Shown: positions 12,906 through 41,500, counted from the stretch's first letter. The stretch is 64,000 nt of DNA from Lepidodermella squamata (GCA_047495785.1 JBLDXI010000019.1:2790001-2854000); one strand, 5' to 3'. Made by a program: numbers and translations. Notes: generated by a model from the sequence alone, not told the origin.

Positions 12906-13383
12906 CCATAATAGATCTATCGACTAGTGAAACCCGCTCCAAAAAATTCCTCATGGGTACAAAGTTGAAACTGCGAGGCAAAAAATATATCATCCGTACT
13001 TAAATTAAGAATTCGTGAAAATTGGGCGCACAGCCGTATTTTCGAGTTTAAATAAGCTGGTAAACCTATTTTTAAAAGATAACTACAGTTTTACCAGCTT
13101 TCTCGTGGTGCGCAGCGGAGATTTTTCGGATCGATTCAAATGAGAAATGCTGCGCACCACGACTGAAAATTCTCTCACCTCAAAGTTTTGGCGGTCGTCT
13201 GAGCAACGTTTAACTGAAATTTCGATTAATTTATCCGAGAATATAATCACAGGCAACAATAAGGTGCTACTGTTGCCTGTTGCATTACTGCGGTGATGCC
13301 GTTAAATATTGACATTTTACAGTCCGTTGGTTTCCCTAAAGGTGCATCATTTTTGCTGCTTTTGCTAAAAACAAAATTTGCCG

Positions 13384-16300: not shown

Positions 16301-19300
16301 TCGACCTTCTGAGTGGGCGAATACTTTTTCTTGACTATTGCGGTAAAATTGTGTGTTGGTTTTGTAGTTTTATCGGCAACTGGCCGTTTGGCATGTCACT
16401 AAAAGTTGGACTTGGTGGTTACGTAGTTGTTGAAAACTCGATGGGCGCGACGGCCTCAACGAACAAATCCTATCCGAGCAGCACAACATACGGCCCCTCG
16501 ACCGCAATCCCCGCGCAAAGGCCCGCGATGGACAGATGGACTTTTCTCGCTTTGTCGATCGACTGCAAAAGCAACACAGCGAGAATTTATATCGACAAGG
16601 TGGAGCGAGGAATTTTTCCAGTTCCTTGCCAAGTTGCGACTTCTGGCAGAATTTCTAGTTCATACTTCCAAATTCGAGGCCAATGGAGGGGCAAATTTGC
16701 GTGTGTTCAGTTGTACTACCGCTCACTAGACAGCTCAGAAATCGACCAAGCGAGCCGATGTCCCTGGAAAAGTAACTAAATATCAAAAGTTTTATTCTAA
16801 TTCTGATATAATAACCTACCCAGCATCCCCTCCTCTGGCAATTTTTTCCTTGGCTTGCACTCTCACGGAAACAACTGGTAAAGGTTGGATCCTGACATCT
16901 AGTGGAAACCCTGTCTGCTCATCGATTATGACCTTCAGTGAAACGTAAGCGATAGATTACAAACTGTTAATATGAGTCGAGGAATAATTTTCTTTCAGGG
17001 CATGGAACTTACCCACAGCGAATGATTACCTCAGCCTTGCACAAACCATGATGGATCTTCAATATTCATTCACGGTCTTGATTCACGTGAGACCAGACGG
17101 ATTCGGCTACATCTTCAGCTGGGTTACCAGTGTGGCATCATCCACACCTGAAGTTGGCATTTTCATCCACGCTAATGGATCTCTTGCTTGGCGGAACAAG
17201 TGTAGGGATGGCTCATCCGCAATGGATTTCATTTCCTCGAAAGTTGAACTGAAAAGGAATAGATGGGCGTTCGTTGGAGTGAGCGTTGATTATTTCAATT
17301 CCTTCATCGGGCTAGTCTACGAGGGCGAGGTGATTGAGCGGTTTCCGTTCACTTGCGTAGACGGTCTGGCGACAAATGCAAGTGTTTTCCGCATCGGAGG
17401 TGCGGGCTCAGTTGTCGGGGACCTTGCTTGTCTCCAGATTTACGCGAATGTCACCATGAATCGGCGTCAATTATACTCACTAAAACGCTGCCCGCTAACA
17501 TCAAGCCCCGCAATGATAGCAACGGCGATGGCACCGTTGGACAACAATTTCCAAGTTAAATCAATCAAGCCCAATTTGTATAACTTTTATTCGTGGGCGA
17601 ATAATTTCGTTGCAACTCCAGTAAATACCGCTAATGTGCTAAACTTTACACTGACATCCACACTTGGGCTGCCGTGGTGGCGATCGGGTTCTTCGGCATA
17701 TCGTTTCGCAAGCGATATCGGTAATTACGTATCATGTGCAGCATCCTGCCCATCAAGAATATTACCGGCAAGCAGTTCAACTTCATTCTCCGCGGGAGTT
17801 TTTGTCTACAGCTCTGCGGCAACTCCTATAGCAGGCACGCCTATATTGCAGATCGCTGTTAACAGCAGCATTTCGCGATATACAATTCGCTTATTTCCAA
17901 ATTACGTTGAATATGCCATGACCCCGGCCTCCAGCGGCTCTGTTACAGTGAAGCTCGAAAATGCAACGGTCTCGGGTGCGTGGAGTCACTACAGCATGGC
18001 TGTAGATGGAATTAACAGACGCCTGGTGGCATATTTTGATGGCAGCACGGTTGGCTCCACGACTTACCTCGAGCCAACTATGCCCGATGCACTCACAGTT
18101 TTCTTAGGATATGTGAGATATAAATTGTTTTGTCATCTTCTACCCACATTCCGAATTATTTCTTAGGACCCATCTGTCCCGAAATACTTCAATGGCTCCC
18201 TTGCTTGCTATTACGTCTATCAGGGCAATGTCACGCAGTACTTGGCTATGGAACTTTGGTCTCAATGCCCAACAGCAACAATGCTGCAGGGTCATGTTTG
18301 CGAGAGCGATCTGACCGCGAGCGCAAATGTGACATTCAGCTCGGTTTACACATCCCCAAGCCCTGGTAATGTCCCATACAACAAATGGGTCACTATGGGA
18401 CAATGGATTGGCAATTCCCTCGCATGCTGCTGGCGTCCTCTGACATCATTGAAAACCGAGTACATTCAGGCAGATTTTGGCGAGGTAGTAACTATCACTC
18501 AAGTAGCTACCCAGGGCGATGAGCTGAAAAATTGCTTCGTCAGAACTTTCCATCTCGAATACAGCAACATTGGTGTTTATTTCACTCAATTCAATGACAG
18601 GGCCAGAGCTGGCGTAGTTAAATCGTTCACGGCGAATACTGATTCAGGAACGTTAATCTGGAACTTCATACGGCCATTCATCACAGCTCGATACCTTCGA
18701 CTGTACCCTGACACGTGGTCGAATGAAGTTTGCCTGCGATGGCTTGTTCGTGGATGCCCAAGTAAGACTTGCATTTTTGACAGCTATAAATTCAAATATA
18801 TCCCAAGGTCTGATGTGCAATGTCGAGCTGTATGACGGCGATGCTTTAGTCAGCGCTTCTAGCGCAACAACTCCTGCCGATTTCACACGAAACCATCTCA
18901 ACGGAGTTGATTGGGTACCTCTTCTAGCAGACAAGCAGCCTTACTTCCAGATTGAATTCAAAGAGGCGAAACTGATCAATACCGTTTCAGTTCAATCGAG
19001 TATGAGTAGTGCGGCTTCAATCACGAAGTACCATTTGCTGTCAAGATTAGCAAATTCTGCCAGCAAATGGGTCGGCTATGTCTGGCGAAACGGTTCGACC
19101 CTTAGGATATTCGAAGGTCCTACTGGGTCCGATTCCCAGCCGATCGCAAACTATTTGAACCCGGCTCTTGTCGCGGTGGCAGTTCGGCTGTATGTCGATG
19201 AATTCAATGACATACAGCCTGTTGGGAGATTCAGCTTCAAAGGCTGTAGTTATGTGGACGACATCGGTTTCGCTGCTACAGGCCTATCTGTTCGAATAGC

Positions 19301-19916
19301 AGATACTCCGCCTGGTTCAACAACTGACTTATTGGCTCTGCCTAGATTTTCACCTGATGTTGAAGCTGCTCCATTTCGATCTCGAATCTTGCTGTATTCA
19401 GGTTCTGTGAAATCCGGTAGGTACGTCGTTGTTTCAGGGTCCTCCGTGGACCTCCTCCTGTGCCACGTCAGTGTCAGCTATGATCCTTCAACCAACTATG
19501 CTGCTTGGAAAACAGTCAACTCGTCACATTTCGATCAAACGGTCAACACTGGGTTAACAGATGGTTCGATTATCGAACCGATTGGTTCTCAACCCTCCAC
19601 GTCAGGATCTTATTTCCAAGTTGATATGGGTGAAACAATGCCTAGCATCTCGAAAATCGTACTAGTTCTCTCAGGGAATAGTGGTTGGATAAACTATGCG
19701 GGTCCTGTTGGGTTCAGACTTGTTGCCCGTGTTGGCGATTCTGATACTTTCTCTCAGAATCCGATTTGTGACTTTCACGATGGCTATCGAGCACCGAACT
19801 TGATCTCATGTCAAAATCTCGAGCTTTTCTGCACGCCGCCAATGTCGGGTCGATACATAAGCGTTGAGAAAATAGGCGAAGTGGCGGTTAAATTCTCAGA
19901 GATTCGAGTTTTTTGA
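13384..19916 (+). CDS. Large secreted mosaic lectin-like protein (~1749 aa): signal peptide, PAN/apple, F5/8 type C (discoidin) domains, 3 LamG/ConA-like domains, fucolectin-type (FTP) domain(s)
   Basis: Seven phase-consistent exons: 13384-14740, 14788-15337, 16368-16771, 16824-16944, 16999-18112, 18167-18761, 18808-19916; motifs VECMSRCNLLPTCQS, YIQADFGEVVTITQVATQG, PFITARYLRLYP, CTPPMSGRYISV. Confidence 0.85.
15731..15805 (-). repeat. tRNA-derived (SINE-head-like) sequence in intron 2
   Basis: Minus strand GCGCTGGTGGCGTAGTGG...GGTTCAACCCCCACC has Pol III A-box- and B-box-like motifs; acceptor and anticodon stems pair poorly, so not called a tRNA. Confidence 0.6.
16158..16184. repeat. Short interstitial (CCCTAA)n tract
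   Basis: aacctaaccctaaccctaaccctaacc, about 4 units. Confidence 0.75.
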
Positions 19917-20348: not shown

Positions 20349-21924
20349 TTAACGGCAGCTGATTTTGACTTTGAAAGGAGGCGGCTTCAAGATTGCGCCA
20401 TCAGGGCCATCGCTGCATTCAACGTCTTTGGTGACCAGCTCAAATGAAAACCGGTGTAGAATGGCAGTGAAAAAAATGAAATATTCAACTCGAGCCAAAT
20501 TTTCACCCAGGCAGACGCGCGGTCCCAGTCCGAAAGGAAAAAAGTGGCTCGAATGGCTTAACAGCTTGCCATCACTGTCGAGAAACCTTTCAGGTGAGAA
20601 TACTTCGGGATTTCCCCAGTAGGATTTGTCGTTGTGAACGGCAGCTTGGTTATATAAAATCATGGTATTAGGGGGGATGTCGTAACCTAAAGAAAACACA
20701 TTATACCGGATTAATCAAAGTAGTAAAGGTATGTACCAAAAACAGTGGCGTGCTCTTCGAGGTTCGTGCGAAACAAGGCAGTTGGGACAAAGGCGGAGTG
20801 TCTAAATACTTCATTCATAACGGCATCCAAGTAGACTAGCTTCTGCCTATCTGCCAATGTGGGTAGTCTATCAGATTCGATAACTTTATCGATCTCATCA
20901 TGGCATTTCCTCTGAATTTCCGGATATTTCGATAGGTAGAAAAGGGTCCAGTTCAGGGCTGTTGCAGTAGTATCTGTCCCAGCGACGAAGAAATCTGCAA
21001 CAATACAAGTGTATTCTTGATAGGTGAAAGGTTCGCCCTGCTTCTCAGCTTGGATAAACAAATCAGGGAAATCTCGAATGTTCTCAGGATCGTAGTCTAG
21101 CCGGTGCTCTTCAACAGCTTTTCGCAGGTTCTCTTCGGCAAGTTTAATGAACTCGTTGCCGGCCTTCATTTGGCTTGAGGTTGCGAAATTCTCCAAATAA
21201 GGTATCATTAGAAAAGCTCCTTGCTCTGCCAAGGATTGGCCTGTAGCTATTGCTATCAGTTCAGCTATCTTTTTAAAGGTCCAATTATCTCGATCGAAAC
21301 GTTTGCCAAGAACCAATGACCAAATTACATTTGATACTGCGTTTATCACCATTGCAGCAGGATCGGTTGTTTCATTAGCTTTTGAGACTGCTTCGAAATC
21401 TGTCAGCAAAAACCTCGTCTCTTCGTGGATTTTGACCACAATCGCCTCTTTCCCCATTCCTAGAGAATTACATGTCGGATTAAGCAATGTTTTAGACAAA
21501 ATGACTCACCGAAGTCTCTCATCGCCTTGAGGCCGAATCGTCGATTTTTGCGCCATTTATCATGGTTCGCGAAAACAACACCTTGCGGCAATGATTTGCA
21601 TCCAGGAATCAAAGGTTCGAATCGGTGCTGAAAGGTTTTGCCTTGGTTGATCAGAACTTCGTTGATCACTTCAGCATCGCTCAGTGCCACCATTCTCAAG
21701 GGTCCGAAGTAGAAAGTGAAAATGGGCCCATATTTCTCCGACAATTTCGCCATGGTTTGCCACAGTTTCGAGCTTTTACCATGCATGCCAAGTTGGTACA
21801 AACTTCCGATGTAGGGAAAGGCGAAGGGACCTGGTGGCAACTTGAATCGGCGGTCTAACAGATAGCGTTTCCATCCAATGAAAATAAGAGCTGTGAGGCC
21901 AGCTCCGAAAATCACACCAAGCAT
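20349..21924 (-). CDS. Cytochrome P450, CYP2 clan (intact, 3 exons)
   Basis: Exons 21924-21510, 21459-20737, 20686-20349; N-terminal TM and PPGP, WRKNRR, FVAGTDTT, EVFR, PERF, FGLGPRVCLG heme motif. Confidence 0.95.
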
Positions 21925-22899: not shown

Positions 22900-23050
22900 A
22901 TTGACGCGTTTCGTATAGCGACAAACAAAATCACTGTTTCCGCACCTCTGCATCACTTTAAAGGTTCGATACTTGATAGCGACTTGACTGGAATTGAAAT
23001 TTTCAATGCCACCATTCTCAAGGGTTCAAAATAGAAAGTGAAAATAGGCT
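22900..23050 (-). pseudogene. Small relic of a CYP exon 1
   Basis: caccattctcaagggttcaaaatagaaagtgaaaataggc closely matches 21688-21729 of the intact CYP. Confidence 0.6.
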
Positions 23051-23148
23051 GGCAGAGAGTAGAAATAGACTTGACTTTACCCCTTCAAGTCAAGTCCTTC
23101 TTACTGATCCTAAGCAAACAATTCTCGGCTTTTATGAAAGCAACGCAT

Positions 23149-23821
23149 TTAGCCAAGAAATTCGGGATGGCTGGTAGCAGTTCAGTCGAATTTGCAGTCA
23201 TTGACGAATGTTTCGAAAGGTATTCAAACAAACGATTGTTTTCTAAAAACTCTACTGAAGTTTGCCATAGTATCGCTGAGCTACTAGCTCAAACAGCAGA
23301 TGGCTTCTTTCAACCTGATCCGGAAACCAGGGTAGGAAAAAATTCTAAAGCTACTTTTATTTGCGTTTTCATGATTATTACGCTCCGCAGGATTTTGAGC
23401 TGAAAAAGTCTAAAGATCGATTGATGCTGGTTCTCGGCCGGCTTGAGCAGCGCCTGAAAGAAAATGGCGGTAAATTCCTATTTGGAAACTCTGTAAGTCA
23501 TATGATTTCTCGACTCCAATGAAGTATCTCGCGTTTTTTCAGTTCACTTATGCAGACTTGGCACTTTTCGCGTACATCGATATTTTGCGATTGGAAGATT
23601 TCGAAGAATTCAGGACTATAGCTGAAAGCAAATTCCCAGCCCTCATTGGAATGGATCGAAGATTTAGAGAGGTAAATGGCATCAAGGAATATATAGCATC
23701 GAGGCCCGAAGACTATATCATGACGTTCAGAAAGAAACTTCGCACTCTAGCTGCAGCCATTTCATGCCTGAAAAGTTGTTTGGTCTGCCGATGCAGCAGA
23801 AACAAAGTGACGGCTACCTAG
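23149..23821 (+). pseudogene. Glutathione S-transferase copy 1, 5'-truncated
   Basis: LAKKFGMAG...IDECFE, LKENGGKFLFGN, FTYADLALF; exons 1-2 and start of exon 3 not found; tail ...CLKSCLVCRCSRNK. Confidence 0.8.
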
Positions 23822-25003
23822 TTCTGAGCTTATTTTGCAGAATTAAAAGCCTTATTTGTCTATATGAGATTCCTGATATTTTTCGAAGTGCTCTTTCATG
23901 CATATTTATGTATGACAAAATTACTTTTCATACATGTTTTTTTCATAAAATCACGTCTTTAACGGACGTTGATTTAGAACTGGAGTTAGGGGCTAGGGTT
24001 AGGTGCCAGGGTTCATTTAACCCTTTCAAGGCGGAATTATTTATCTGCGCTAGAAAACATATTTGACGGCAGTTCTAGGGATTTTCGAAGGCCCTGATCA
24101 CGATTTTGAAATCCGTTTGTCTTTATCTATCACCATTAAGGCTGTACAAAAACTGGCTGAAACCATCCTATCCGCCCAGCTGATTTCAGTCGATTTTTCG
24201 AGCACCTTAATTTATGTTTCAAGCGCCTTCAGCTTTGCAATTTTAGGTTCTAACTTACTCCCATGAATGTCCCGAGATTCTACCTCTTTCATATAACTGA
24301 AAAAGCTTCAGAGGCTCAGATCTGAATTCAGCTTTTCCAGTTTTTCCTCGCGACAGTTTTTGCAGCACAAAACTCACGCACTCCGCCTGTATAAGTCTGA
24401 GCGGATAGGACGAATTCGGCCGGTTTGATTGAATTGTAATAGCGTCGTCATTTTTCATTTCCAATTCGGAACATTTACACAGATTACACAGATGTCAAAA
24501 GTTTCAATTAACCGAAAACTAGTCATCTGGCATTTCTCTAATGTTTTCAGCTCGAATTTAATGAAAAAAATATGTATGAAAGATTGCAGCATTCTATTTT
24601 TGTCAATATATTTTTTGCTAATAAAATTTACATTTTGAGGTTAAAAGATTTCTGTGTCCAGGAAAATTTGCCCTGTCTATTGTTTTTTGGATACTAAGGG
24701 ACACACGATAGCCGTCGTAAACACATGCTTGTAAGCAAATACAAATGCTCACAGGCATTTATAATATTGCGCGTATAATATTGCAGTATGCACGTTATTT
24801 TTATCGACCATTATTAATAATAGGCCACAACCACACCCGAGTGCTATATAGCTGCATGCGTAAACGCGGTGCTTCATTTTTGCGCTCATACACATATTAT
24901 ATATATGCATGCAATATAAGACTCGTTTTTGGCAAGAACTAAGGCTGCTTTACAATCTGCCTCTTTTGCTTAGATGAGTTAGCAATTTATAAAATTTATC
25001 ACT

Positions 25004-26168
25004 ATGTCTTACGATCCAGACGACAAATTCACGTTTTACTACCTTCAAGGGTGAGCCAATTCTCGATGCCGATATTTGCAGTATAAAATATGGGACATTT
25101 TTAGGTACGCGCGTGGTGAAGTGAGCCGGTATATTCTGTATTACAACAAGGTCTCGTTCGATGACAGTAGAGTTCTGTTCCGGAACTGGCCTGGCTTTAA
25201 ACGGAGTAAGTTCACCTAGTTCCTCAAAATTTATTTTTAAATTCTAATCTTCTTTAAGAAACCCCTTTGGGACAGCTGCCGTGGTTGAGGATTCTTCACA
25301 GTGATGGTTCGCGATCCGAGGTTATTCAGAGTGGGGCTATTGTCCGATATCTGGCCAACCGATACGGAATGGCTGGCCGAAATGCCCTTGAAGCTGCTTT
25401 AATTGACGAATGCTATGAAAGGTACAAGCCTAGATAGGTATTTTGTCCATAATTTCACTAAAATTGTTTTGTTACAGCGTCAGCGAATTGCAAGTACAGT
25501 CTGCTCAAGCACTATTCGTGTTTGACGAAAAGAAACGGGTAAAACGAATTGTGAATCTGACTAATGTCAAGCTATAAGTATATTCTTCTTTTCAGGAGAA
25601 AGAATTGAAAAAGTGCCTGGATCGAGTTCCTATCGTTCTGGGTCATGTCGACAAACGCTTGAAGGAAAATGGCGGGAACTTCATCGTTGGCAACAGCGTA
25701 AGTTTCAAAAGGTCCAAAAGGTCCAAAAAGTCACAGATAAGCAGAAAAGTGGGCTTAGATTAAGGACCGATGGGCTCTGAAACCGATCAACACTGATCAG
25801 CAAAGGGGATTAATAGGAGATTTCATAAAAACCTAGACTCGGGATAATCGGAAGAAATACTGTTATCATTCATCTGCTTTTTCTTTCAGTTTTCTTATGC
25901 TGACTTGTCCGTTTGTGTTCTACTGGACGTACTGCGTCTCGGCGATCACGAAGACATGCGAGTTGCGGTCGAAAGCAACTACCCTGGCCTCATCGCTATG
26001 GACCGACGTTTCCGAGAGACAGAAGGCATCAAGGCCTATTTGAGCTGGCGGCCGGCTGACTACATATTCACCTTTCTGAAAAAAGTTCGCTCTGTTGGAG
26101 CTTTCTTCCTCAACGTCAAACGCTGCTGTTGCTGCTGCTGTAACAGGAAAAAAGTCGACGACGTTTAA
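25004..26168 (+). CDS. Glutathione S-transferase (sigma/pi-like) copy 2, 6 exons, poly-Cys tail
   Basis: MSYDPDDKFTFYYLQG|YARGE...TPLGQLPW...IQSGAIVRYLA...FSYADL; GT-AG introns in phase; ends KRCCCCCCNRKKVDDV. Confidence 0.92.
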
Positions 26169-26543
26169 CAAACTTTGCTGTATGAAAATATCGTGCCCAC
26201 CTTTTTTGGAAATAAACTGGATTTTTGACATCATCGATCAAGCAAAAAGCGTATCGATCTTTTCGCATGTTGGCAACGCTCATTTTTGCCCCACATAATG
26301 AATGGATAGTTTTTATTGGACGCATTACTACTATATTATATATGTTTGCGTAAAATGCCGCTACTAAGTATACTCATCGCGACACCTGGAGAGTTGTAAA
26401 GAGCTTAGAGTATTCATGCATGCCGGCCATTGAGAAATAATGTCCGCAAAACTGGGTTAAGAGGTTTTGGACACGCGACTTCGCACACAATTCTCTTTTA
26501 CTTTTACAAAAGGTGTTATAAAGTGTTGTAGCTTTTAAGTGAG

Positions 26544-27559
26544 ATGGCATATGACGAGTCGGATAAATTTACTCTATACTACTTGCAAGGGTGATATTTC
26601 GGTTCAATCTATCGCTGCACATTTTGTTCAACTCCTGATTCGCAGATATGGCCGCGGTGAAGTCATTCGATACATCTTCTACTACAACAAAATTCCCTTC
26701 GATGACCATCGCATTCTGTTCCGAAACTGGATGAAGTTTAAGAAGAGTAAGACTTAATCTTGCAGCGAATGACTCAAAGCTGAATTGTTCAATGAATAGC
26801 CACGCCACTTGGCCAAGTCCCTTGGTTGAAAGTTGAACATAGCGACGGAACTGTTACAGATTTTGTTCAAAGTGGAGCGATTGTTCGCTACCTGGCTAAA
26901 CGCTACGGCATGGCTGGTAAAAATCCCGTTGAAGAAGCTCTGATTGACGAATGCTTTGAAAGGTAAGATGAGAAACCCTGGGATTCGCGTCATTTTTTAC
27001 TATTTTAAAATCGAAGCAATCAGGAACTACTGAACCAATCTGCGGAGGCGTTTTTTCACCCTAATAATCAGATAAAGGTTCGACTCGTGATTATGTTACA
27101 TAGTATGTAAATGCATAAGTTTGCTTTTGTATAGGAGGAGCAAATGAAGAAGTCTTTTGATCGCGCTCCTGTAGTTTTCGGACTCATGGAACAGCGACTC
27201 GTAGAGAATGGAGGAAAGTTTTTGGTCGGAAATACCGTGAGCTTTCTATAATCCTAAAATGTATCCGATAAAGGACTCTCTTTTCTCTCAAGTTCACTTA
27301 TGCTGATCTTGCTGTATGCGCTCTGCTTGATATTCTGCGCCTCGACGATTTCCGAGAAATGCGCAAGATTTTAGAGAGCGGCTACCCAGGTTTGATAGCT
27401 ATGGACAAGCGTTTCCGCGAAACTGACGGCATCAAAGCTTATCTGAGCTGGCGCCCGGCCGACTACATCATCACATTCCGCAAGAAATTGGTCGCTCTCA
27501 GTAAAGTCGTTCACTGCTTGAAGACATGCTGTTGCTGCGGAAATCGCAAGCGACGCTAA
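26544..27559 (+). CDS. Glutathione S-transferase copy 3, 6 exons, poly-Cys tail
   Basis: MAYDESDKFTLYYLQG|YGRGE...PLGQVPW...VQSGAIVRYLA; ends CLKTCCCCGNRKRR. Confidence 0.92.
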
Positions 27560-28226
27560 CGAGGCAGGATTGTTCTAACCTTAATGCTTAACTTCAAGGC
27601 CATTAACCATTTGTTGTGTTTTTTAATGAAAATTGTTTTGAACTATGCCTTTTATTTTAAAATAAACTTAGCTGATTTCATCTATAGCTGGAGCAAACCT
27701 GTTTTTCGCGAGGTTAAGCGATAATTACCGTAAATTGGGGAAAAAAAACCCCCTGGTTTTTCGCTTTTGTATACGTTTCAGAGGGTCATGATTCAGATTT
27801 TATAGGAAGCTGAATTAGCACCAATTTTTCCACCGGGTACACATAGCAACTTCTAGTCCTACTTTTATTGTAGGGGTTCACATAGCCTTGAACTTTTTTG
27901 TTCAGACTTGAAAATCATCAGCATCCATTTTGTTATAGTAGAAAATGCGATGCATAAATGAGCTTTACTTATCTAAAAGCAAAAGCTCTCCCTTCAGCTA
28001 TCTTGATATATTACTGCCGTGGCTTGATAATATCGGTGTGGTTTGAGCCGTACGTGTCGTACTAAAAAAAACTTCATAATCGAGAGTAAAGAGAGATATA
28101 AGCTCAGAAATAAAAACACCCTGGGGCAATTATTCCATTAAGCTTTTTAGCCTAAATTGCAAGTACAAATTGCAAGTATTTTCCCGGCTTCCCAGGCACA
28201 ACGTTTAATTTTCCACTGCTCCTGAA

Positions 28227-29870
28227 ATGACTTACGACGAATCCGACAAATTTACCTTATACTACTTTCAAGGGTTTGTTTTCCAATCATATTCGTTCTA
28301 TGATTTTTATTTCGATAATTATGACGCAGATATGGCCGCGGTGAGCACATCCGTTACATGTTCTACTACAACAAGGTCAAGTTCGAAGACTATCGCATTC
28401 CGTTCAGGCAGTGGATATTCACTTTTAAAAGAAGTATAATTTAATTGCCCGTTCATTTTCACTAATTCAGGTTAACCAAAATAAAAGGTACCCCTATGTT
28501 TCAAGTTCCATGGTTGAAAATTGAGCATAGCGACGGAACTCGGACCGATTTGATACATAATGGTGCAATCATGCGCTATCTAGCTAAACGATACGGCATG
28601 GCTGGCAGGAACAAAGTCGAAGAGGCAACCATTGACGAATGCTTCGAGAGGTAGTAACTGCATGCAATAATTGCTTTAGCATCCTTCTTTTTTTCATTTA
28701 CAGCTTGAAGGACTTTCTCGACCAGTATTTAGATGCGTTTTTCCAAGCTGACGAACAAAAAAAGGTTGAGAATTTAATGGTCTTTCGATCAAACTTTGAC
28801 AAAATTATACTTTTTTCGAAATTTATTATCTATAGGCAATTGATTTGCGAAAGTGCTCCGATCGAATTCCGATAGTCTTCGGCTTCTTGGATGGGCGTTT
28901 ACAAGAGAATGGTGGGAAATATTTGGTTGGAAACAATGTAAGTCCTTTGTAACGTTATATAACACAGCTATTTACTATATAAACTTTTCGAAAATTCAGG
29001 TAAATAATTGCGGTTAAATCGTCATTTATGCATTAATGAAAGATGTTTCAAATAGCCCAAAATCAGGTAAAATGTAAAATCCATAAAAAAAATTCTGATG
29101 TCACCTGATACAAATTGCAGTGTTGTATGAAATATCGTACCGAATCGGGACAAACCTTGAATCCTCAAAACATGGAGTTGTCCAACATTGCCCTGCATTA
29201 AGGGTTTGGATCGAAAGAAAATTGCAAACGTTCTTTTGTCTTTAAAGATTAGAATGGGTGATCGTGGCGGGCTCGTTTTCCTAGCACACGTAGCTCTCAC
29301 GTATGCGGCTGACGGCAGGTAAATTTAGCTATTATCGGGTCGCTCATTGCTGCGTAACAAATATTGAAAATGTACACTTTTCGATCACAACCCTGCTTAT
29401 GAAGGAAAATTTAACTTTGCAATTTTTCCATGTTTTTCTAAAAGGTCAAAATTATGAGGCATGATAATTGTATTCTTGGTTTGTCTGAGTTCCGGGTTTA
29501 CCTTTTTGTTCAAATTTCGTATTCCCTGAGGTTCAAACCTCAAACATACTCAAAACTTGTTATTTTTTTCCAGTTCACGTACGCCGATCAGATGCTTTTC
29601 CTCTTTTTCGACATCCTTCGAATCGGCGATACAGAAGACATGAGGCTTCAAATCGAAGGCGACTACCCTAGTCTCGTAGCCTTGGACAAGCGATTCCGAG
29701 AAACCGAAAGCGTAGCCGAGTATTTACGCCGTCGACCGGCCGATTACTTATTCACCTTCCGCAAGCGCCTAGTCCGCTACGGTCCATGGTTCGAATATGC
29801 GTTTCGCTTAATCCGATTTTACCGCAAATTCGCCGCGGCACTGAAGCGAATAATATTTTTCTGGAGATAA
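28227..29870 (+). CDS. Glutathione S-transferase copy 4, 6 exons, basic/aromatic tail
   Basis: MTYDESDKFTLYYFQG|YGRGE...PMFQVPW...IHNGAIMRYLA; last exon from 29574, ending AAALKRIIFFWR. Confidence 0.9.
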
Positions 29871-30766
29871 ATCTTGCAAAAAATTATGAAATAATAATGT
29901 CAAATAAAAAATTGAATGCTTTGCAAATCTTGTTTCGCTCAATCGATCGGGCGATAGAAGGGTTCCTGAAATTTGAGATAGATTTAATCTTGAATTCTTT
30001 CGGTTTTTAGCTGGAGAAGCTTCGTTTGGTCCGGAATAAGAATTTGACGATAATAGAAAACCTGGACGTTGAAAGCTGAGACGAAGTTCTGGATATTCAC
30101 CATAACTATGTTTCTGCCAGTCCGAGAGCACTGGTCTTTATCGTTGCGCAACCCTTTGGAATTTTAGAATTTTTTAGGAAAAACAATTCATTTTGAAACT
30201 GAGTCCACTTGGGGAATCTTCCATCCTTTATCTACGATCTAACTGAAGAAATAAAAAATTTACCGGAGATAAGCCCGATGGTAACTGGTTCCGTAATTTT
30301 CGGTTTTTACCTGGTTGGATTAAGCAAGGAATTGAGGATTTCCATTAGCTTTCATCAGTTTTCTTGAGATTTCCTGGAAATTTAGAAAGTTGGCAAAATC
30401 TCACTTATCAATTGTTTGCGGTCATTTAGTTGTTTAGTCTCGGCATTCCTTTCTTGTAGTAAAAATTCCGTAGCAGGCATGAAGCATAATATATGAGCAT
30501 CACTTATCACTTATCTATCGCAATGGCTCTTCTTTCAGCTACTATGTACATATTATTATAGCGCCGTGGGTCGATAATATGCGCGTTTTTTTCATGCGGC
30601 ATAGTAAAAAAAGCTTCATTGACGAGTGTATAGAGCGTAAGCTCAATAGTAAAAATACTCCAGGCAATTTTTTCACAAAGCTTTTATTTAGCCTCGATTC
30701 CGAGTACATATTAGTTGTACATTTACCGGCATTTTTTGCCACATCATTTTATTTTCTACATTTAAA

Positions 30767-32873
30767 ATGAGTTACGATGAATGCGACAAATTTACCCTGT
30801 ACTACTTCCAAGGGTTTGTTTTCCCATAATCTTGGTTCTATGATTTTATCATTTTTCGATTAATTATAACGCAGATATGGCCGTGGTGAGCACATTCGTT
30901 ACATGTTCTACTACAACAAGGTCAAGTTCGAAGACTTTCGCATTCCGTTTAGGCAGTGGATAATGAACTTTAAAAGAAGTAAAATTTATTTGCCGCTCAT
31001 TTATTCTAATTCAGATGACCAATTTAAAAAAAGGAGCCCCAATGTTTCAAGTTCCATGGTTGAAAATTGAGCACGGCGATGGAACTCGGACCGATTTGAT
31101 ACAAAATGGTGCAATCATGCGATATCTGGCTAAACGGTACGGCATGGCAGGGAGAAACAAATTTGAGGAGGCAATCATTGACGAATGCTTCGAGAGGTAG
31201 GAATTTCAATCAAGTTGCGTCTTTTCGATATATTTCGATAAATACACAGCTTGAAGGACTTTCTCGACCAGTCTGCAGATGCGTTTTTCCAAGCTGATGA
31301 ACGAAAAAAGGTTGAGCCTTGAATGGCTTTTCGCAATCACTGATAACATGTTATTTCATACAAAATCTAGGCAGCTGATTTGCAAAGGTGCTGCGACCGA
31401 ATTCCGATAGTCTACGGCTTCTTGGAAGCGCGCCTGCAAGAGAATGGCGGGAAATATTTGGTTGGAAACAATGTGAGTCGCCAGTTCAAGTTCTTTTTCA
31501 GCCATTTTATTCTAAATTTTAAATTCAAGTTTTAAAAAAATTTATATAAAATGTTGGACCTTTTTTCTAAAGCAATAGTCTGGGAAATCCAAGATCCGGG
31601 AATCAAATTTGCTTAATTTTGGCAATTTTGCAATTTAAGGGTCGATAAAGCTGAAAAAGACCAAGATGCTATCTCGTGTATGCAGATGAGTGCCCAAAAT
31701 TATTATCTGCTTATTTTCTGAATTTGGTAAATTTCGACAAAAATAATGTAAAATTCGTAAACTCGACAATTAATTTTAAATTTTTTCTTGTCACCTATTT
31801 TGAATAAAAATGTATCTAATTATTTGCCAATTTAGCAATTTAGAAGGCATTATAAATGTGTCCTAACAGCTATTTACTAATAATTGCTCAAAAATAAAAA
31901 ATATTTTTTAACCTAAAAACATGGCGTCGGCCAAAATCAAAAACTACCCAGCATAAAAGAAATTAGCTTCGCAACGTTTTCAATATTTTCCCCCGAATTG
32001 TCCAAAATATATGGATTGCTTTGTTCGCGTTCTAGGTTTCCTAATCCTCCGAATTCTCCAAGTCTCTAAAAATCTTGAACTCTAACCGACCTACAGGGTG
32101 GCCAACAAATTCTGCAGAAGGCGAATTCGATGCACATCATTTTAATGAGGAGTATCAAGAAATTGAGGAGTCCCATTGGCAAAAGAATACTTGAAATTCT
32201 TAAACTTTTTAAAACTGTTCATTAAATTGATGCGCATCGAATTCGCCTTCTGCGGAATGTTTGGCCAGCCTGTAGGTCGGATGTAGGTCGGATAGCTAAA
32301 TTTACCGGAAAAAACTCCGAAAACCCCGATGGTACCTGGTTCGGTAATTTTCGGTATTTTATCAGGTTGGACCAAATTTCTCGGGACTTTTTTCATTCCA
32401 TCAACAAGTGAAATAATTGATTATTATTCTCGTGCTTTTTTGAATTTTTCCAAAATCGAATTGAAATTCCTGCGTTTTTAAACGAGTTGCTGGACTAATT
32501 TAGTCTAATCAAACTAGTGCCGAGTATATTCTTGACTCCTATGTTGACATTTTTTAGTGTAATCTTATTTTTTCAGTTCACGTACGCCGATCTGATGCTG
32601 TTCCTTATCTTCGACATCATTCGAATTGGAGATTTAGAAGAAATGCGGCGTCAAATCGAAGGCAACTATCCCGGTCTCGTAGCCTTGGACAAGCGATTCC
32701 GCGAAACCGAAGGCGTAGCCGAGTATTTACGACGCCGACCGGCCGATTACCTATTCATATTCCGCAAGCGCCTGGTCTGCTACGGTCCATGGTTTCAATA
32801 CGCCTTTCGCTTAATCCGATTTTACCGCAAATTCGTCTCCACGCTGAAGCGAATTATATTTTTCTGGAGATAA
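30767..32873 (+). CDS. Glutathione S-transferase copy 5, 6 exons, basic/aromatic tail
   Basis: Near-duplicate of copy 4; PMFQVPW...IQNGAI; ends VSTLKRIIFFWR. Confidence 0.9.
32094..32272. mobile_element. Tc1/mariner-type MITE in GST5 intron 5
   Basis: TA-CAGGGTGGCCAA...TTGGCCAGCCTG-TA; ~55-bp imperfect TIRs (gcagaaggcgaattcgatgc / gcatcgaattcgccttctgc). Confidence 0.85.
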
Positions 32874-33702
32874 CTCTTGCAAAAGCTTCGCAAATTAAGA
32901 GGTAGAAATAATGTGAAATAAATAAATTGAATACTTTGCGAACGTTTTTTCATTCAATCGATCGGAAGAGAAAGGTGTTCCTAAAATCTAAGCCGTGCAA
33001 GATTGTTTGAATCTTGAAATCTTTCAGTTTTTGGCTGGGAAGCATGCTTCGTTATGTCTGGAAAAAGAATTTGGCGAGAAAAACCTAGATGTAGAAAGCC
33101 AGCGAAGCTTTTGAGATACAAAAGCTGCCTCCATGGACCACAAAGCTGGTTCTTCCCGGTCGCTGGTCTTTGCCGTAGTTTTAGAAACTGTTTTTTTAAT
33201 TAAGCTCACGTGGCGAATCTTCCATCCTTTATCAATGATTTCACCGGGAAATTACAAATTTACCGGAGGAAACTCTGAAAACCCAACTATTTCGGTAATT
33301 TTCGGTTTTTACCTAGTCGGATAAAAAAATTTCGGATTTTTACGCAGTTCGATTCGCCAAAGACATACTATTCTAACGGCATTTTAGATTTTTCTAAGAT
33401 TTTTCTTGCCATTTTTCTCATTTTCTTATAATCCCTTTTCCGTTCCTTTGTTTGCTTTACTTTTGGGACAAGCTTTATTTCAGGTTAAATGTTGGCTACT
33501 GAAAAATAGGATCACGAATGAAGCACGGACATTATTCCTACGTCGTAAACTACAATTTCTTTAAGGCCATGTCAGGGTCAAAAAAAAACTGAATGGAAAA
33601 ATTATCGCGTGCATCAACTTTTTACAAAAGGCTACAAATTGAATTTTTTCAGAATCAAAATATTGAAATTTTCAGCGTCATTCTTTTTTCACTACCTCGG
33701 AA

Positions 33703-35078
33703 ATGAATTACGACAACTCAGACAAATTCATTTTGTACTACTTCCAAGGGTTTGATTCTAATTAAAATCTTAATCTGGGTCATGTTCGATTAATTATCGC
33801 AGGTATGGCCGCGGTGAAATCATCCGTTACATTTTCTACTACAACAAGGTCAAGTTCGAAGACTTTCGCATTCCCTTCAGGCAATGGATGGAATACAAAA
33901 AAAGTGAAGCTGCCAGTAGTGTTTCGCCAATTTCAAATAATTTATTGTTATTTAATTAAAGAGGCCCCCTTGGGTCAAGTTCCGTGGTTGAAAATCGAGC
34001 ATAGCGATGGAACTAAGACCGATCTGGTTCAAAGTGGTGCCATTATTCGCTACCTATGCAAACGATTCGGCATGGCTGGTAGGAACAAAGTCGAAGAGGC
34101 AATGATTGACGAATGCTACGAGAGGTTCGAACTTCACGAGTTGCGTCTTGCTGATTTTTTTTTCGATAATTTTTACAGCTTGAAGGAGTTTCTCGACAAT
34201 GCTGCAAATGCGTTCTTCCAAGCTGACGAACGAAAAAAGGTTGAGAATTTGGTGGCTTTTCAATGACTGATAAAATTTCATTATATTTCCACAATTTCTG
34301 TCCAGAAAATTGAATTGGAGAAAGTCTACGCTCGAATCCCGATAGTCTACGGCTTCTTAGAAGGGCGCCTAAAGGAAAATGGCGGGCAATTTTTGGTTGG
34401 ATCCAATGTGAGTACCTAGCTGAAGTTCTTTTTTCAGCTATTAATTGAATTTTTAATGAACAAGGTTTAAAAGGTTTTATAGAAATAATAATGTTGGACC
34501 TTTTTCTAAAGCAATAGTCTGGGGAGATTTATATCCAAAAACAGGATTTTTTCAATAAATCATCGCACAATTAGGGTGTCAATCGGATGACCTTAATATC
34601 GCAAAATTACTAATATTTGTTTAAAAATGAGGCCTTTAAGGGTCAATAAAAATTGAAAGGTCACGATGCTATTTCATATGCAAATGAGTTTCCTAAGTAT
34701 CTGCAAATTTTCCGAATTTGATAAATTTCGTAAATCGCAAATTTCAAAAAGTGTCTCTACATTTCTGCCAATTTTTTCCAGTTCACGTACGCCGATCTGA
34801 TGGTGTGCCTTCTCTTCGACATTGTACGAATCGGAGACACCGAAGACATGAGAATTCAAGTCGAAGCCAAATACCCTAGTCTCGTAGCCTTGGACAAGCG
34901 ATTTCGCGAAACCGAAGGTATGGCCGAGTATTTACGCTGGCGACCGGCCGATTTTCTGTTCACCTTCCGCAAACGCCTCATCCGCTACGGTCCACTGATC
35001 CGTTACGCCATGCGCTTTACCCGATTTATCGGCAAAATTTTCCGAGCTTTGAAGCGAATCATTTTCTTCTGGAAATAA
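33703..35078 (+). CDS. Glutathione S-transferase copy 6, 6 exons, basic/aromatic tail
   Basis: MNYDNSDKFILYYFQG|YGRGE...APLGQVPW...VQSGAIIRYLC; ends IFRALKRIIFFWK. Confidence 0.92.
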
Positions 35079-35170: not shown

Positions 35171-37390
35171 TCAACGGCTGTGAATTTTGACCTTGAAATG
35201 AGGTGGTTTGTGAATAACAGCATCATCGCTATCTTCCCATTCAATTTCTTTCGTGATCAGCTCGAATGAAAACCGATGCAGTATCGCTGCGAGGAAGATG
35301 AAGTATTCGACGCGGGCCAGGGCTTCGCCGAGGCAGATTCGAGGACCAAGGCCGAAAGGCATGAAATGGCTCGAGTGGCTGAGTAGTTTGCCGTTTTCGT
35401 CGAGGAAACGCTCGGGTGAGAACTCTTCAGGGTTGCCCCAGTAGGCCTTGTCATGGTGCAGACCGGCCAGATTGTACATAACCAGAGTATTCGGCGGAAC
35501 ATCATAACCTGAAATAGAAAAGTAAGTTTTTTTTAGAAATTTCAAATTTCAAACAAAATTCTAAAAATTTAAATCAAATTTCCAAGGTGTCTAAAACATT
35601 TCATACAAATTTTTAAAATTTTCAAAAATAAATTCGAAATTTCAAACTTCAACTACAATTAGAAAAAAATTCGAAAATATTGAACAAATTTAAAATTTGA
35701 AAATTTGTAAAAATTTAAATTTTCAATTTTCATAAAGTTGGACATACCTGATAATGTAGCATGTTCATCGAGGTTGGTGTGAAACAAAGACAGCGGTACC
35801 AAATTAGCATGTCGCAGGACTTCATACATGACCGCATCTAGGTAGGTCAAATGAGCCCGATCTGCCAGCGTAGGCATGCGATCCGATTCAATGACCGCAT
35901 CCAGCGCTTCGTGACACTTTTGCTGAATTTTCGGGTATTTCGATAGGTAGAACAAGGTCCAAGCCAAGCCATGTGCCGTAGTGTCGGTGCCGGCCAGAAA
36001 CATGTCACCCATGACCGTGGCGAAATCGTACAAATTGATCGGATCGCCCTCTTTTTCCGCTTGAATGAACAAATCCGGGAAGTCGCGGATATTTTCCGAG
36101 TCAAAGTCAGGCCGGTGATCTTCAATCGCTTTGCCGAGTTGATTTTCCATCAATTTAATAAATTCGATGTCAGTTTTGACCTGAGATGGCGTTGCGACGT
36201 ATTGAAGCCATGGAATTAGAAGAAAGGCCTGCTGTTCCACGGTAGTTTGGCCGGTTAGGTTTTTCAGAACATCGATTATGTAGACAAAGGTTTTATCGTC
36301 ACGGTCGAATCGCCTGCCGAGCACAAGAGAGCTGATGACGTTGCCAACGGCGTTCGTCAAAACATTTGCAGGGTCGATTAATTCGCTATTTTTCGCCGTT
36401 ACTTCCAAATCAGCCAACAGGAACCGGCATTCTTCTTGAATTTTTTCAACCATCGCTTCACGACCCATGCCTGCAAAATTATGAATGTAAATTAAACCAA
36501 TTTTTCTCAAATTTTCCGTTTGGGATTATTTTTGAATATTCCATTTTTATTTTATACATTTTATTTTTAATATTTTCAAATTAAATCATTGAGTTTAATC
36601 AAATTCCATTCAATTTCAAAATCGACTTTGAAAAAATCAAAGCCATTGATCATCGATTATCGATTATCGACTATTGATTTATCAGAGTCACGTTCCAATT
36701 TTTGATATTTCTTAGATGATTTTCATCAAAATCGAACTTAATTACTGATTGATTATCGATTATCGATCGATAGCCAATCGATCAAAATCAGTGCATTAGG
36801 ATTTTTTATATGCCGGATGTTTTTCCGAGTGAATTATATTTGTTTTTATTTTACACTAAGATTCACTAATTTGATCGCCTCTTTTGGAATCTTTTTTAGT
36901 CAATTGTTATTAATATTAAAAATTTCCAATTTCAATATCATTTTGAGAATTAATTTTAGGATTTTTAGCACTTACCGAAGTCCCGCATCGCCTTAAGACC
37001 AAATCGCCGATTTTTGCGCCACCTGTCATGGTTAGCAAATGCGATGCCCTCGTGAAGTTTGCTACAGCCAGGAATGCGCAGATCAAACCGCCAGCTGAAG
37101 GTTTTCGCCTGCTCGACGAGCGCCTCATGAATCACCTTAGGGCTGTTGAGCGTAATCATGCGTATCGGGCCAAAGTAGAACGTGTAAATTGGGCCGTACT
37201 TCTCGACCAATTTCGCCAGTGATCGCCACAACTTAGGCTTCCGGCGATCTCGTCCTAGTAGGTACAAACCGCCGATGTAGGGTAAAGGCAGCGGGCCGGG
37301 TGGGAGGCGGAATTTTCGGTCGAAAATAAAACCTTTCCAGCCGAATAATACAGTGGCAATAGCGATAATTCCAGCAATAACTGCAAGCAT
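35171..37390 (-). CDS. Cytochrome P450, CYP2 clan (intact, 3 exons)
   Basis: Exons 37390-36976, 36470-35748, 35508-35171; PPGP, WRKNRR, FLAGTDTT, EVLR, PERF, FGLGPRICLG; same intron positions as 20349-21924. Confidence 0.95.
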
Positions 37391-38552: not shown

Positions 38553-41500
38553 TTAAATGCATTGAGGTAGCTGGGACCATTTTCCAGACGGCTCGCACAC
38601 AATGAGCGCCGGACCTCGCAGGGTCATTCCGGTCGCGCATCGGTACGCAACCGTGTCCCCTGGCGTTGACAGACGGTCGCGGAACGAGGCGGCCGACGAG
38701 GCGTCCGCAACTGGCGGCACGGTGCCGCAACTCGCCTCAGCCTTAACGTAGGCCTTGACCAGGTACAGCCGTTTTGTTGTTACGTAATAACTAGGCGCGA
38801 GGACTTTGTTAACGAGGAGTGTGTTGAAAAGCGCGACGCTGTTCATGCGTAACGAGAAGCACTCGACCAAATCGGCGGGCGAGAAAATCGACCCGGCTGC
38901 GGATACCGAGTTGTCGTCGGCGTATGGGATGGCGCCGGTTGTCTCCGTGTCCGAGTAGAACAGGCCCATGAAGTCGCCCTGGCTGATGGAGACCTGCTGG
39001 TCGACAGGCACTTCGTACTCGACGAGGCCGGCGGTGTAGGCGCGCAGGGCGTTGTAGCCGACTAGTTGGTACCGAGTGTCATCAAGCTATTAAAAGTACA
39101 AATTCGTCAACATTTGAAAGATCTGGATTTTACGGGATTGTACAGGAGTTTTTTTAATTTCAAAATTAATAGATTTCGAACCATATCATATTTTATTCTC
39201 TATCTAAATTTCTATCTAAATTTGTAAAATTTTACAAATTGATGCAAATTTCTAAAAATTAAACTTAAATTCCTAAAAATTATTTTTCAAGTTCAACAAT
39301 AAAATCTGATCTGCAGAAAAATTAGAAAAATTGAAAATATGTAGAAATGAATTCTAACGGGGCCGCGAATTTTCGAAAATTTGATTTTTTTTTGTCAAGA
39401 ACTCAAAAAATCGATGAAAATGAGAAATTCGGCTTTCTTGGCTAGGAGCGTCATCTCAATAAAATAAAAAATCAGTCATTTATTCCTCTTACCTTTCTGA
39501 AAACTCCAAGATATACTGTCGCGTTGCCTTGCGCCAGTGCGAGGAACGTCCAATGAGTCACCTTGCCGCCGCATGGGAACTGCGCACCTGGGCAGATGTT
39601 CATCCATCCACCTGGCGCCCTGATCGTGCCCATATTTTTGCCGATGGACCCCTGCAAATCTGGAACACCCAACGTGCAAGACGGCAGTTCTTGGCATAGC
39701 GGCAGTTGCGTCCAAGAGCCATCTGACTGGCAGACAACTGTCGCGTTGCCGGCCATGACGAAGCCCAGACGGCATTTGAACACGACCTTGTCACCAGCGC
39801 CGGGTTTGTTCGAAAACGGCTGCGAAGAATCGACTACGGCGGGGTAGCCGTTTTGAATGACGGGAATGTCTGAGCAGAAGCCGGCGCCCAACGATTTGCC
39901 GAGTTCCCGAGCTTTCGACTGCTCGTTCAAGCGTGACGCATCAACTAGGTCAGAAAATGGGACAAAATATTATAAAATTATCGATCAACTTTGAACAATT
40001 TATGAGCAAACACATTTTTGAAGTTTGAAATTTTATTAAAAAATTTTGAAATTTTGAATTTTTTTTAAACTATTTTTCAAACATTTTGAAAATTTCAAAA
40101 CAAATTTCAACAAATTCAATTACGTTTCAATTTCGCAATATTTTTCAAATTTCAAAATTTCAAAATTTAATGTTTATTTTCAAAATTTTAAAATGAATCC
40201 TATTAAAGAATTTATCAGAAAATAGGTCACTGACCTGCGACAAATGCCTTTAATAGGTGAAGTCGCTTCGTAGGCGTCGCAACGGGCGAATTTAGCGAAA
40301 CCGTCCGCGCCCTCATCACCTCAGCCGCCGTCATTTGGTACGCGTAACAGTCATGAAGGTCATTCTGCGAGATACCAGCGACCAAATGCTGGCCATCAGC
40401 AAATGGAATCACGCCGTAACGATCATCGGAATCATAGAAAACGCCAACGAAATCGCCAGATTGAATATTCATCGTCTTGGTTGACTGGATTTGGACTATG
40501 CCGATTTTAGTCGCATTCCAAGTTTCGTAGCCAACCAGCGTGACCTGGTTCGACCCGCCCCGGCGCCAAACTGAGAGATACACCATCCTCTCATCATTCC
40601 GGGTTGAAAATAACTCCCATGTCGTAATGCGACCGTTGCAGGAAAACGTCACGGTTGGGCAGAAATTCAACCAGTTGCCCGGTTTCGGTAGCGAATTCGG
40701 GGTGATGAGCGGGAGATTCCGCGGACCGGCCGAACAAACGGGGGGTGACGTGCAGACTGGAAATTGCGACCACGTTCCGCTTGGCTGGCACGACACGGTC
40801 AGTGAACCCGATTGCAGGTACAACCCAGCCATGCATTGATACGTCACCGAATCGCCGGCTGAGGACCGGCCTAGGAACGACTGCCCGGACTGCGTGGCGT
40901 TTGTAACCACTGGAGCGGAACCGCAGCTCCTCGACCCTAAAATCCTTGCGCGTAAGTTGAATAACCGCTTAACTGGGACAGCGCGATTTGTCCGAATTCG
41001 ATGGTCGCCGTTCATTGATTCAACAATCGAGTCTCGATAGATTGGGACACTGATACAGTCCCATAATTCTTCGACTCGGAAGTCCATCAGCGCCTGTTCC
41101 GAGGCGTAGTTAATCACAGCCTCGCTTTCGGCTGTGTCGTAGTAAATTCCGAAATAATCGCCGTCTCTTATGGTAATTCGGTCTTTTTCGGCGATATTTT
41201 GCGAGATCAGGCCGTATTTTGATACGGTGATGGAGTTGTTGCCTAGCATTTGGAAGGTTGAGTAGCCGGTCTTTCGCCACACTGAGACGTAGACGGTGGA
41301 GTTGCCGCCCTGGGCTACGCTGAACAGTTCCCAGGCGGCGATTGAGCCGAAGCATCGCGAGTTTATGCCTGGGATTAGACAAAGGTTGAGCCAAGTTCCA
41401 GGCTGAGAGGCGCCTTTTGAATTTTGCGAAATTTTAGGTGCGCCCACGGTACACGGCTGTTGACTCGAAATAACTGAAAACACATTTCGTTGAAAAATAA

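Follow-up and report, generated by a model that had tools for sequence, protein, structure and literature searches.

A 64,000-nucleotide stretch of Lepidodermella squamata DNA (GCA_047495785.1 JBLDXI010000019.1:2790001-2854000; hereafter the window) contains at positions 23146–35078 (+) six glutathione S-transferase (GST) copies in tandem, head to tail, whose last exons continue for 29–39 codons beyond the end that is canonical for enzymes of this kind. The added codons belong to the terminal exon of real transcripts and have been found at this locus only, and they specify tails of two types, a basic tail with clustered cysteines in copies 1–3 (type A) and a Cys-poor tail rich in basic and aromatic residues in copies 4–6 (type B). 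The finding that sister clades carry two different tails on the same cationic and hydrophobic theme points to one shared selected property, as judged from the predicted peptides. We favor membrane association by two different anchors, an explanation that we hold to be somewhat short of probable.

Length and composition of the C-terminal extensions

The norm within the genome was established by fetching the 3′ ends of 40 other GST_C_3-type genes from the 121-Mb assembly, in which the window lies on contig C19. In 40 of 40 the stop follows the end of the Pfam profile by 4–6 codons, with the pattern R|PxTPF-stop, whereas the six array copies run 36–46 codons past the profile end. Sigma-class chains in the PDB also end ∼3 residues after the RP motif, and both comparisons agree with the preliminary description of this locus, according to which such GSTs normally stop a few residues after that motif. 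Relative to the in-genome norm the extension amounts to 33, 33, and 29 residues in copies 1, 2, and 3, respectively, and to 39 residues in each of copies 4–6, a range of 29–39 residues that replaces the 35–40 given earlier.

Type A tails have net charges of +6 to +9 and 4–6 Cys clustered within 6–10 residues, with K/R before the cluster and NRK(K/R) after it. The tail of copy 1 (23720..23818, +) has 33 residues, 4 Cys, and a net charge of +8; that of copy 2 (26067..26165, +), also of 33 residues, contains six consecutive Cys encoded by mixed TGC and TGT codons, with KR and NRKK on either side; and that of copy 3 (27470..27556, +) has 29 residues, 5 Cys, and NRKRR at its end, with RNA-like depth across it. 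The three type B tails (copy 4, 29751..29867; copy 5, 32754..32870; copy 6, 34959..35075; all +) have 39 residues each, charges of +10 to +12, 10–13 aromatic residues, and almost no Cys. The copy 4 tail is amphipathic, with a net charge of +10 and 13 aromatic residues; the copy 6 tail has a net charge of +12 and a hydrophobic moment (µH) of 0.90, and its last nine residues are those of copies 4 and 5 except for the final R/K. All tail strings quoted in the preliminary description were recovered, copy 2 having KRCCCCCCNRKK, copy 3 KTCCCCGNRKRR, copy 1 CLKSCLVCRC, and copy 4 a basic/aromatic string that has close variants in copies 5 and 6, and the division made there of the array into basic Cys tails and Cys-poor basic/aromatic tails is borne out by sequence, charge, and composition.

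The first 7–8 residues of the extension, (F/I)TFRK(K/R)L, are the only part common to the two types, which suggests, at the level of sequence, a single ancestral loss of the stop followed by divergence into type A and type B. Three-frame translation revealed no frameshift relation of type A to type B, and this candidate origin was rejected. A pure TGC microsatellite was likewise rejected as the source of the poly-Cys run, because the codons are mixed TGC and TGT, partly common to copies 2 and 3.

Transcription of the terminal exons

RNA evidence was taken from contigs assembled from one public run (X1), with a DNA run (X2) as comparison. The X1 contigs cover exons only, depth falling to zero in bins between genes and within intron 5 of copy 4 (636 nt). 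Predicted introns are skipped with GT..AG ends: the complete set in copy 2, the second and third in copy 3, and all five in the copy 4/5 type. Because these splice joints are absent from X2, the X1 contigs are processed transcripts; they derive from the same or a very close organism, and the copy 3 pieces show zero differences from the window.

In copies 2 and 3 the X1 depth extends across both tail and stop, for copy 2 as RNA-like coverage at bin resolution only. The contig at 29830–29984 extends from within the copy 4 tail, across the stop, and into the 3′ untranslated region (3′UTR). None of the joints listed for the X1 contigs falls within a last exon, and AATAAA or ATTAAA is found 16–102 nt after each tail stop. 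A 723-nt spliced contig that had been placed on copy 4 and extends into the first tail codons was rejected as a copy 4 transcript: 23 of its 24 variant sites read as copy 5, which makes it a copy-5-like mRNA and leaves the 3′ contig as the only direct evidence for copy 4. The last-exon stops read in the preliminary description are upheld by RNA, in that spliced contigs cover tails, stops, and short 3′UTRs.

Constraint on the extensions

Pairwise ratios of nonsynonymous to synonymous divergence (dN/dS) for the type B tail are 0.18–0.38, compared with 0.20–0.28 in the rest of the exon, at dS of 0.4–0.7. On the three-gene tree the pN/pS of the tail is 0.38, with synonymous changes in significant excess (P = 0.0025). 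Type B tails align gap-free, whereas alignment of 3′ flank or intron requires 26–48 gapped positions per 120 nt. By these sequence comparisons the type B tail is under purifying selection. In type A the synonymous sites are saturated (dS >2), yet the open frames end no more than 4 codons apart in all three copies, and the basic flanks are kept together with 3–4 aligned Cys positions (motif CLK-x-C-x2-C / CCCC). Such behavior fits that expected of a translated, constrained sequence.

Organization of the array and gene models

Gene models were built from splice joints in the RNA-like contigs together with GT/AG and phase rules, and that of copy 6 from homology and splice rules. The array comprises five complete six-exon genes of 246–257 aa and one 5′-truncated copy. 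What had been called a six-gene array thus stands as six copies but not as six whole genes, since copy 1 lacks exons 1 and 2. Repeat families recur every 1.4–2.9 kb across the array. In tblastn searches with exon peptides, six matches each were obtained for exons 3b, 5, and 6, and five each for exons 1 and 2 and for the complete exon 3; exon 4, which is short and has diverged too far between the two clades, was not recovered in every copy. In the complete copies the first five exons measure 47, 101 or 104, 163, 61, and 102 nt, and the last one 267–297 nt. In all six copies the last exon, which is the final interval given for each below, starts at a phase-0 AG acceptor at F-[TS]-Y-A-D. Core identities divide copies 2–3 from copies 4–6, the same split as that of the tail types.

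Copy 2 (25004..26168, +; 250 aa) has exons at 25004–25050, 25105–25205, 25259–25421, 25478–25538, 25596–25697, and 25890–26168; all five introns are GT..AG joints in spliced contigs, and the frame was checked. Copy 3 (26544..27559, +; 246 aa) has exons at 26544–26590, 26646–26746, 26800–26962, 27017–27077, 27135–27236, and 27293–27559; contigs show joints at introns 2 and 3 and a loose end for the overhang at intron 1. Copy 4 (28227..29870, +; 257 aa) has exons at 28227–28273, 28330–28433, 28488–28650, 28704–28764, 28836–28937, and 29574–29870, the spliced contig placed here being copy-5-like. Copy 5 (30767..32873, +; 257 aa), to which the 723-nt RNA-like contig corresponds, has exons at 30767–30813, 30875–30978, 31034–31196, 31250–31310, 31371–31472, and 32577–32873. 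Copy 6 (33703..35078, +; 256 aa) has exons at 33703–33749, 33803–33903, 33962–34124, 34179–34239, 34306–34407, and 34782–35078.

Copy 1 (23146..23821, +), located by tblastn of exon peptides, retains the second half of exon 3 (23146–23219) and exons 4 (23271–23331), 5 (23391–23492), and 6 (23543–23821), with splice sites and phases intact. The 1.2 kb between it and the upstream cytochrome P450 gene holds no exon 1 or 2, and copy 1 is 5′-truncated, without the catalytic N-terminal part. In a side observation, the frame stays open for 37 more codons 5′ of its recognizable exon 3 half (23035–23219), where there is a faint likeness to the missing first half and Q-F-S stands in place of the Q-S motif; if copy 1 is expressed, translation from an in-frame ATG near 23134 could yield an N-terminally truncated, non-catalytic product.

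Assignment to the sigma class

The class assignment was made exon by exon, each piece being searched separately, and exons were joined only locally for frames, lengths, and identities. The Pfam domain GST_C_3 (PF14497) matches the last exons above the cut-off in copies 1, 4, and 5 and below it, in the right register, in copies 2, 3, and 6, and the match ends near residue 60; a genome-wide PF14497 search recovers all six copies. For exon 2 the best PDB matches are HPGDS and GST S2, with alignment to HPGDS residues 13–39, and by this alignment and the spacing to the GRGE motif the Tyr-Phe of exon 1 falls at the position of HPGDS Tyr8-Phe9. Exon 3 best matches GSTs of C. elegans, Ascaris, and Necator (nematode sigma-like / nu) and then sigma GSTs, over an alignment that spans the glutathione-binding motifs G-Q-V/L-P and Q-S-G-A-I; it carries a five-residue insertion common to other paralogs of the same genome. 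The weak PDB matches of exon 6 include squid sigma 1gsq.

The thioredoxin-like N-terminal features (catalytic Tyr, cis-Pro, and Gln-Ser motifs) are present in copies 2–6 and absent from copy 1; exon 1 is acidic, and the N-terminus is not signal peptide-like. By the sequence features tested, the array copies are sigma class in all but the canonical C-terminal end, and copies 2–6 look like catalytically competent sigma-class enzymes. The cytosolic-fold, sigma-type assignment of the preliminary description is thereby supported by Pfam GST_C_3 and by the PDB matches of the individual exons.

Sigma-type GSTs have expanded very strongly in this genome, with GST_C_3 matches numbering more than 100. 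Clusters lie on contigs C7 (∼1.73–1.86 Mb), C32 (∼0.49–0.60 Mb), C9 (∼3.95–3.98 Mb), and C54 (∼1.43–1.49 Mb). Scores on C7 and C32 are identical pair by pair, as duplicated blocks or uncollapsed haplotypes would show; no twin of this kind accompanies the tailed array on C19.

Searches for related tails

Within the genome, the type B tail alone finds only copies 4–6, and the type A tail alone finds copies 2 and 1 only, plus one chance match; a query with the entire last exon meets nothing outside the array better than E = 5e-4. When 1.84 billion representative proteins were searched with a profile built from the six last exons, two matches reached E ≤ 1e-3 and no tail relative was found, one match being a spurious hit to a repeat protein and the other a 66-aa canonical sigma fragment that ends in RPTTPF. 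The query represents half a domain and has limited power for distant GSTs, although a tail relative at 40% identity or more should still score. Word-index searches with the open frames containing exon 6 (142 aa) or exons 3 and 4 (166 aa), chosen so that full-length GSTs fall within the length window, were both blank. A scan of metagenome contigs yielded no tail relative and five loci, all high-GC bacterial GSTs with a different short C-terminus; a feature search of the ESM Atlas returned generic bacterial GST_C clusters only; and the tails alone have zero matches in Pfam and PDB. No described GST class with such a tail was found in these libraries or in literature searches. The preliminary description had taken the copies for a lineage-specific subfamily and had named, as a possible refutation, that the tail is common in a described GST class. 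By the genome, profile, word, and metagenome searches the tails are lineage- and locus-specific, with no relative among the 1.84 billion proteins.

Candidate membrane association and alternative functions

In the explanation that we favor, the stop that canonically follows RPxxx[F/Y] would have been lost in the ancestor of a locus-specific clade of sigma-class GSTs, whose members would now translate a helical, strongly cationic C-terminal extension of 29–39 residues that serves as a membrane-association module in two versions. In copies 4–6 the module would be an aromatic, Arg/Lys-rich amphipathic helix that lies in the membrane interface unaided. In copies 2 and 3, and in the remnant copy 1, it would be a weakly amphipathic basic helix followed by the cluster of 4–6 Cys, which would require S-acylation by DHHC enzymes for membrane hold. 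Glutathione conjugation or peroxide reduction would thereby be concentrated at the surface of the target membrane, with lipid-derived electrophiles or P450 products as possible substrates.

When the tails are checked for the amphipathic helix anticipated in the preliminary description, the result is positive for type B, with µH of 0.72–0.90, values equalled by 0.4–7% of shuffles; type A does no better than shuffled sequence. Wimley-White interfacial sums for type B are −3.9 to −8.5 kcal/mol with all charges counted, and the profile fits a predicted in-plane cationic amphipathic helix. Since the corresponding sums for type A are positive (+4.4 to +5.3 kcal/mol), a type A tail would need lipidation for membrane binding and by itself should bind poorly. 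S-palmitoylated Cys are typically found among basic or hydrophobic residues (PMC3010063), and the type A Cys clusters are embedded in basic and hydrophobic residues, the usual setting for S-acylation; the genome contains at least 10 loci for DHHC acyltransferases. Structure prediction by AlphaFold2 (AF2) on the last exon alone gives a single long helix, at low confidence, for type A and type B alike, and because of the low pLDDT these models were kept out of fold searches.

Other forms of targeting were considered and rejected. The maximum 19-residue Kyte-Doolittle mean is 0.61–1.27 in the six tails, and charges interrupt every hydrophobic stretch, which rules against a transmembrane tail anchor. 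CaaX or Rab (CC, CXC) prenylation is at odds with a last Cys 6–10 residues from the C-terminus in copies 1–3 and with the absence of tail Cys from copies 4 and 6; in none of the six tails is there a Cys among the final four residues. None of the six tails ends in the SKL-like tripeptide of a type 1 peroxisomal targeting signal (PTS1).

Several points weigh against membrane association. Binding and acylation are predictions from sequence, and translation of the tails is inferred from selection. The poor amphipathicity of type A offers it no help, the AF2 models span the last exon only with tail pLDDT of 40–66, and strongly basic helices are just as able to bind nucleic acid or an acidic protein, or to pack back against their own enzyme. 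The RNA evidence is restricted to copies 2–5, the joints examined are those listed, with six more detected, and assembled contigs cannot prove a single molecule or exclude rare isoforms. These last points leave some room for the tails being absent from the main products, through alternative 3′ splicing, early polyadenylation, or an annotation artefact, all the more as the evidence is at contig level and the copy 2 tail is covered at bin resolution. We nevertheless regard this as very improbable: the last exons are free of listed joints, a single contig links tail, stop, and 3′UTR, the poly(A) signals follow the tail stops and not the canonical end, and coding-type constraint is not expected of an untranslated sequence. 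That the extension is a harmless, tolerated by-product of stop-codon loss, without specific function, is improbable to a lesser degree. Tail homologs were not found in any search, the distal parts of type A diverge fast (dN 0.5–0.66), and copy 1 is already decaying at its 5′ end, all as a by-product might behave; these observations have to be set against a type B pN/pS significantly below neutral, the indel-free tails beside indel-rich flanks, an open frame of similar length kept in all six copies at dS of 0.4 to >2, and the conservation of Cys positions and of the terminal motif.

The remaining alternatives grant the tails a function. The most serious rival to membrane anchoring, although we consider it unlikely, is that the tail folds within its own molecule onto the H-site or the dimer groove, as a lid or autoinhibitory element, and there tunes substrate specificity or activity; the two roles may coexist. 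Precedents exist in helix 9 of the alpha-class GSTs, an extra mobile C-terminal helix that touches the H-site ligand (PMC3584069), and in the amphipathic C-terminal HD1 of GDAP1, which autoinhibits the GST activity of that protein (PMC5107993). Type B tails are amphipathic, aromatic-rich, and predicted to be helical, and the near-invariant last nine residues of copies 4–6 suggest a specific contact over generic membrane affinity. Charges of +6 to +12 and lengths of 29–39 residues, on the other hand, far exceed those of a ∼13-residue lid, the Cys-string version is without counterpart among known lids, and two chemically different tails would need to fit the same pocket. Ligands other than lipids, with the Cys strings binding metal or serving as redox or sacrificial thiols in the manner of metallothionein and the polybasic parts binding polyanions or targeting the nucleus or nucleolus, would account for the 4–6 clustered Cys of copies 1–3, for the RKKL, NRKRR, and RKRL stretches, and for the very high positive charge. 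Yet consecutive Cys without CxxC or CxC spacing or His make an untypical metal site, type B tails occupy the same position with almost no Cys, and in Pfam and PDB the tails match zero known metal- or nucleic-acid-binding families; we rate this explanation as more doubtful than a lid and scarcely better placed than a tolerated by-product.

Relation to known systems

Sigma-class GSTs (HPGDS, squid, insect, and nematode 'nu') share with the array the GST_C_3 domain, the catalytic Tyr-Phe spacing, and the Q-x-P and Q-S motifs. The known enzymes and the 40 in-genome paralogs end 3–6 residues after RP, whereas the array genes add 29–39 basic residues, and the array last exon is so diverged that only the canonical 66-aa fragment and the spurious repeat protein reach significance. 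The alpha-class C-terminal helix is short (∼13–15 residues), is not polycationic, and packs on the H-site, whereas the array tails are 2–3 times longer, have charges of +6 to +12, and include a Cys-string version. Common to both is an additional amphipathic C-terminal helix past the point where pi/sigma-type chains stop, with basic and aromatic residues as its last ones (helix 9; PMC3584069).

By analogy, GDAP1 is the nearest functional precedent, and a GST fold with a C-terminal membrane domain is in this sense already known. In GDAP1, C-terminal hydrophobic/amphipathic segments with basic flanks mediate membrane association, and HD1 regulates the GST activity (PMC5107993, PMC2659752). The array shares with GDAP1/GDAP1L1 of the mitochondrial outer membrane the concept of a GST fold joined to a basic/hydrophobic C-terminal membrane segment, which for the array tails is a prediction from the encoded peptides. 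GDAP1 differs in its true transmembrane tail anchor, its interdomain insertion, and its theta/zeta/omega-like domains, whereas the array proteins have a sigma core, no transmembrane segment, and no sequence similarity to it. Cysteine-string protein and SNAP25 likewise carry a run of Cys amid hydrophobic and basic residues on an otherwise soluble protein; the likeness is compositional only, and in the array the cluster lies 6–10 residues from the C-terminus of an enzyme.

Textbooks present cytosolic GSTs as the soluble enzymes of phase II, and membrane-bound glutathione transferase activity is usually assigned to the unrelated MAPEG family. The array may represent the first constitutively membrane-tethered sigma-class GSTs, with two interchangeable anchors in one cluster, an S-acylated Cys string and an in-plane cationic aromatic helix, and, as the cluster lies between CYP2-type P450 genes, with phase I and phase II detoxification possibly coupled at one membrane surface; in this full form the proposal is rather unlikely, and clearly less probable than membrane association as such. 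If the clade did gain a lipid or amphipathic anchor, stop loss followed by selection on the read-through peptide would be a simple route for an abundant soluble enzyme onto a membrane, and sister genes with two anchor chemistries would constitute a natural paired experiment. The tails are short, portable peptides and directly testable as targeting tags. Should they prove to be lids or regulators instead, they would add to the known means by which the GST H-site is tuned.

Flanking P450 genes and other features of the window

Two complete, paralogous, CYP2-clan-like P450 genes, both with hydrophobic N-terminal anchors, flank the array. The upstream gene (20349..21924, −) comprises 3 exon open reading frames with a hydrophobic N-terminal anchor and a PPGP motif and matches Pfam PF00067 with E of 6.9e-22 to 2.2e-48. 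The downstream gene (35171..37390, −), identified by Pfam and CYP2-clan-like by its best PDB matches (CYP2B4, 2A6, and 2C9, E ∼1e-31 to 1e-32), ends 93 nt after the stop of copy 6. An N-terminal fragment of a third P450 lies farther upstream (12694–12993, −). The locus is a detoxification gene cluster of P450s and GSTs. The flanking genes are the sole link of the array to P450s, and their proximity gives no direct information on where in the cell the GSTs are located.

Two segments, 27660–27843 and 30236–30400, have the appearance of very high-copy repeat elements, with DNA-run word depths of ∼1,900 and ∼18,700 compared with ∼80 elsewhere. Short copies occur at 30268–30308, 32319–32359, and 33270–33310, and loose ends are numerous at 30274–30320. 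Situated between genes and within the enlarged intron 5 of copy 5, these repeats probably explain the growth of intron 5 from 56–192 nt in copies 2–3 to 374–1104 nt in copies 4–6.

Outside the array, long open frames at 13378–19916 (+) with F5/8 type C (discoidin) and Laminin_G_3 domains probably form one large gene of secreted or adhesion type. At 38553–43574 (−) paralogous open frames form a tandem family, in which a repeated module has a Sushi (SCR) domain at its end. A tandem repeat at 45627–46009, which translates as KERKG in one frame and, from the other strand, as FPFLS, is simple-sequence DNA and no gene.

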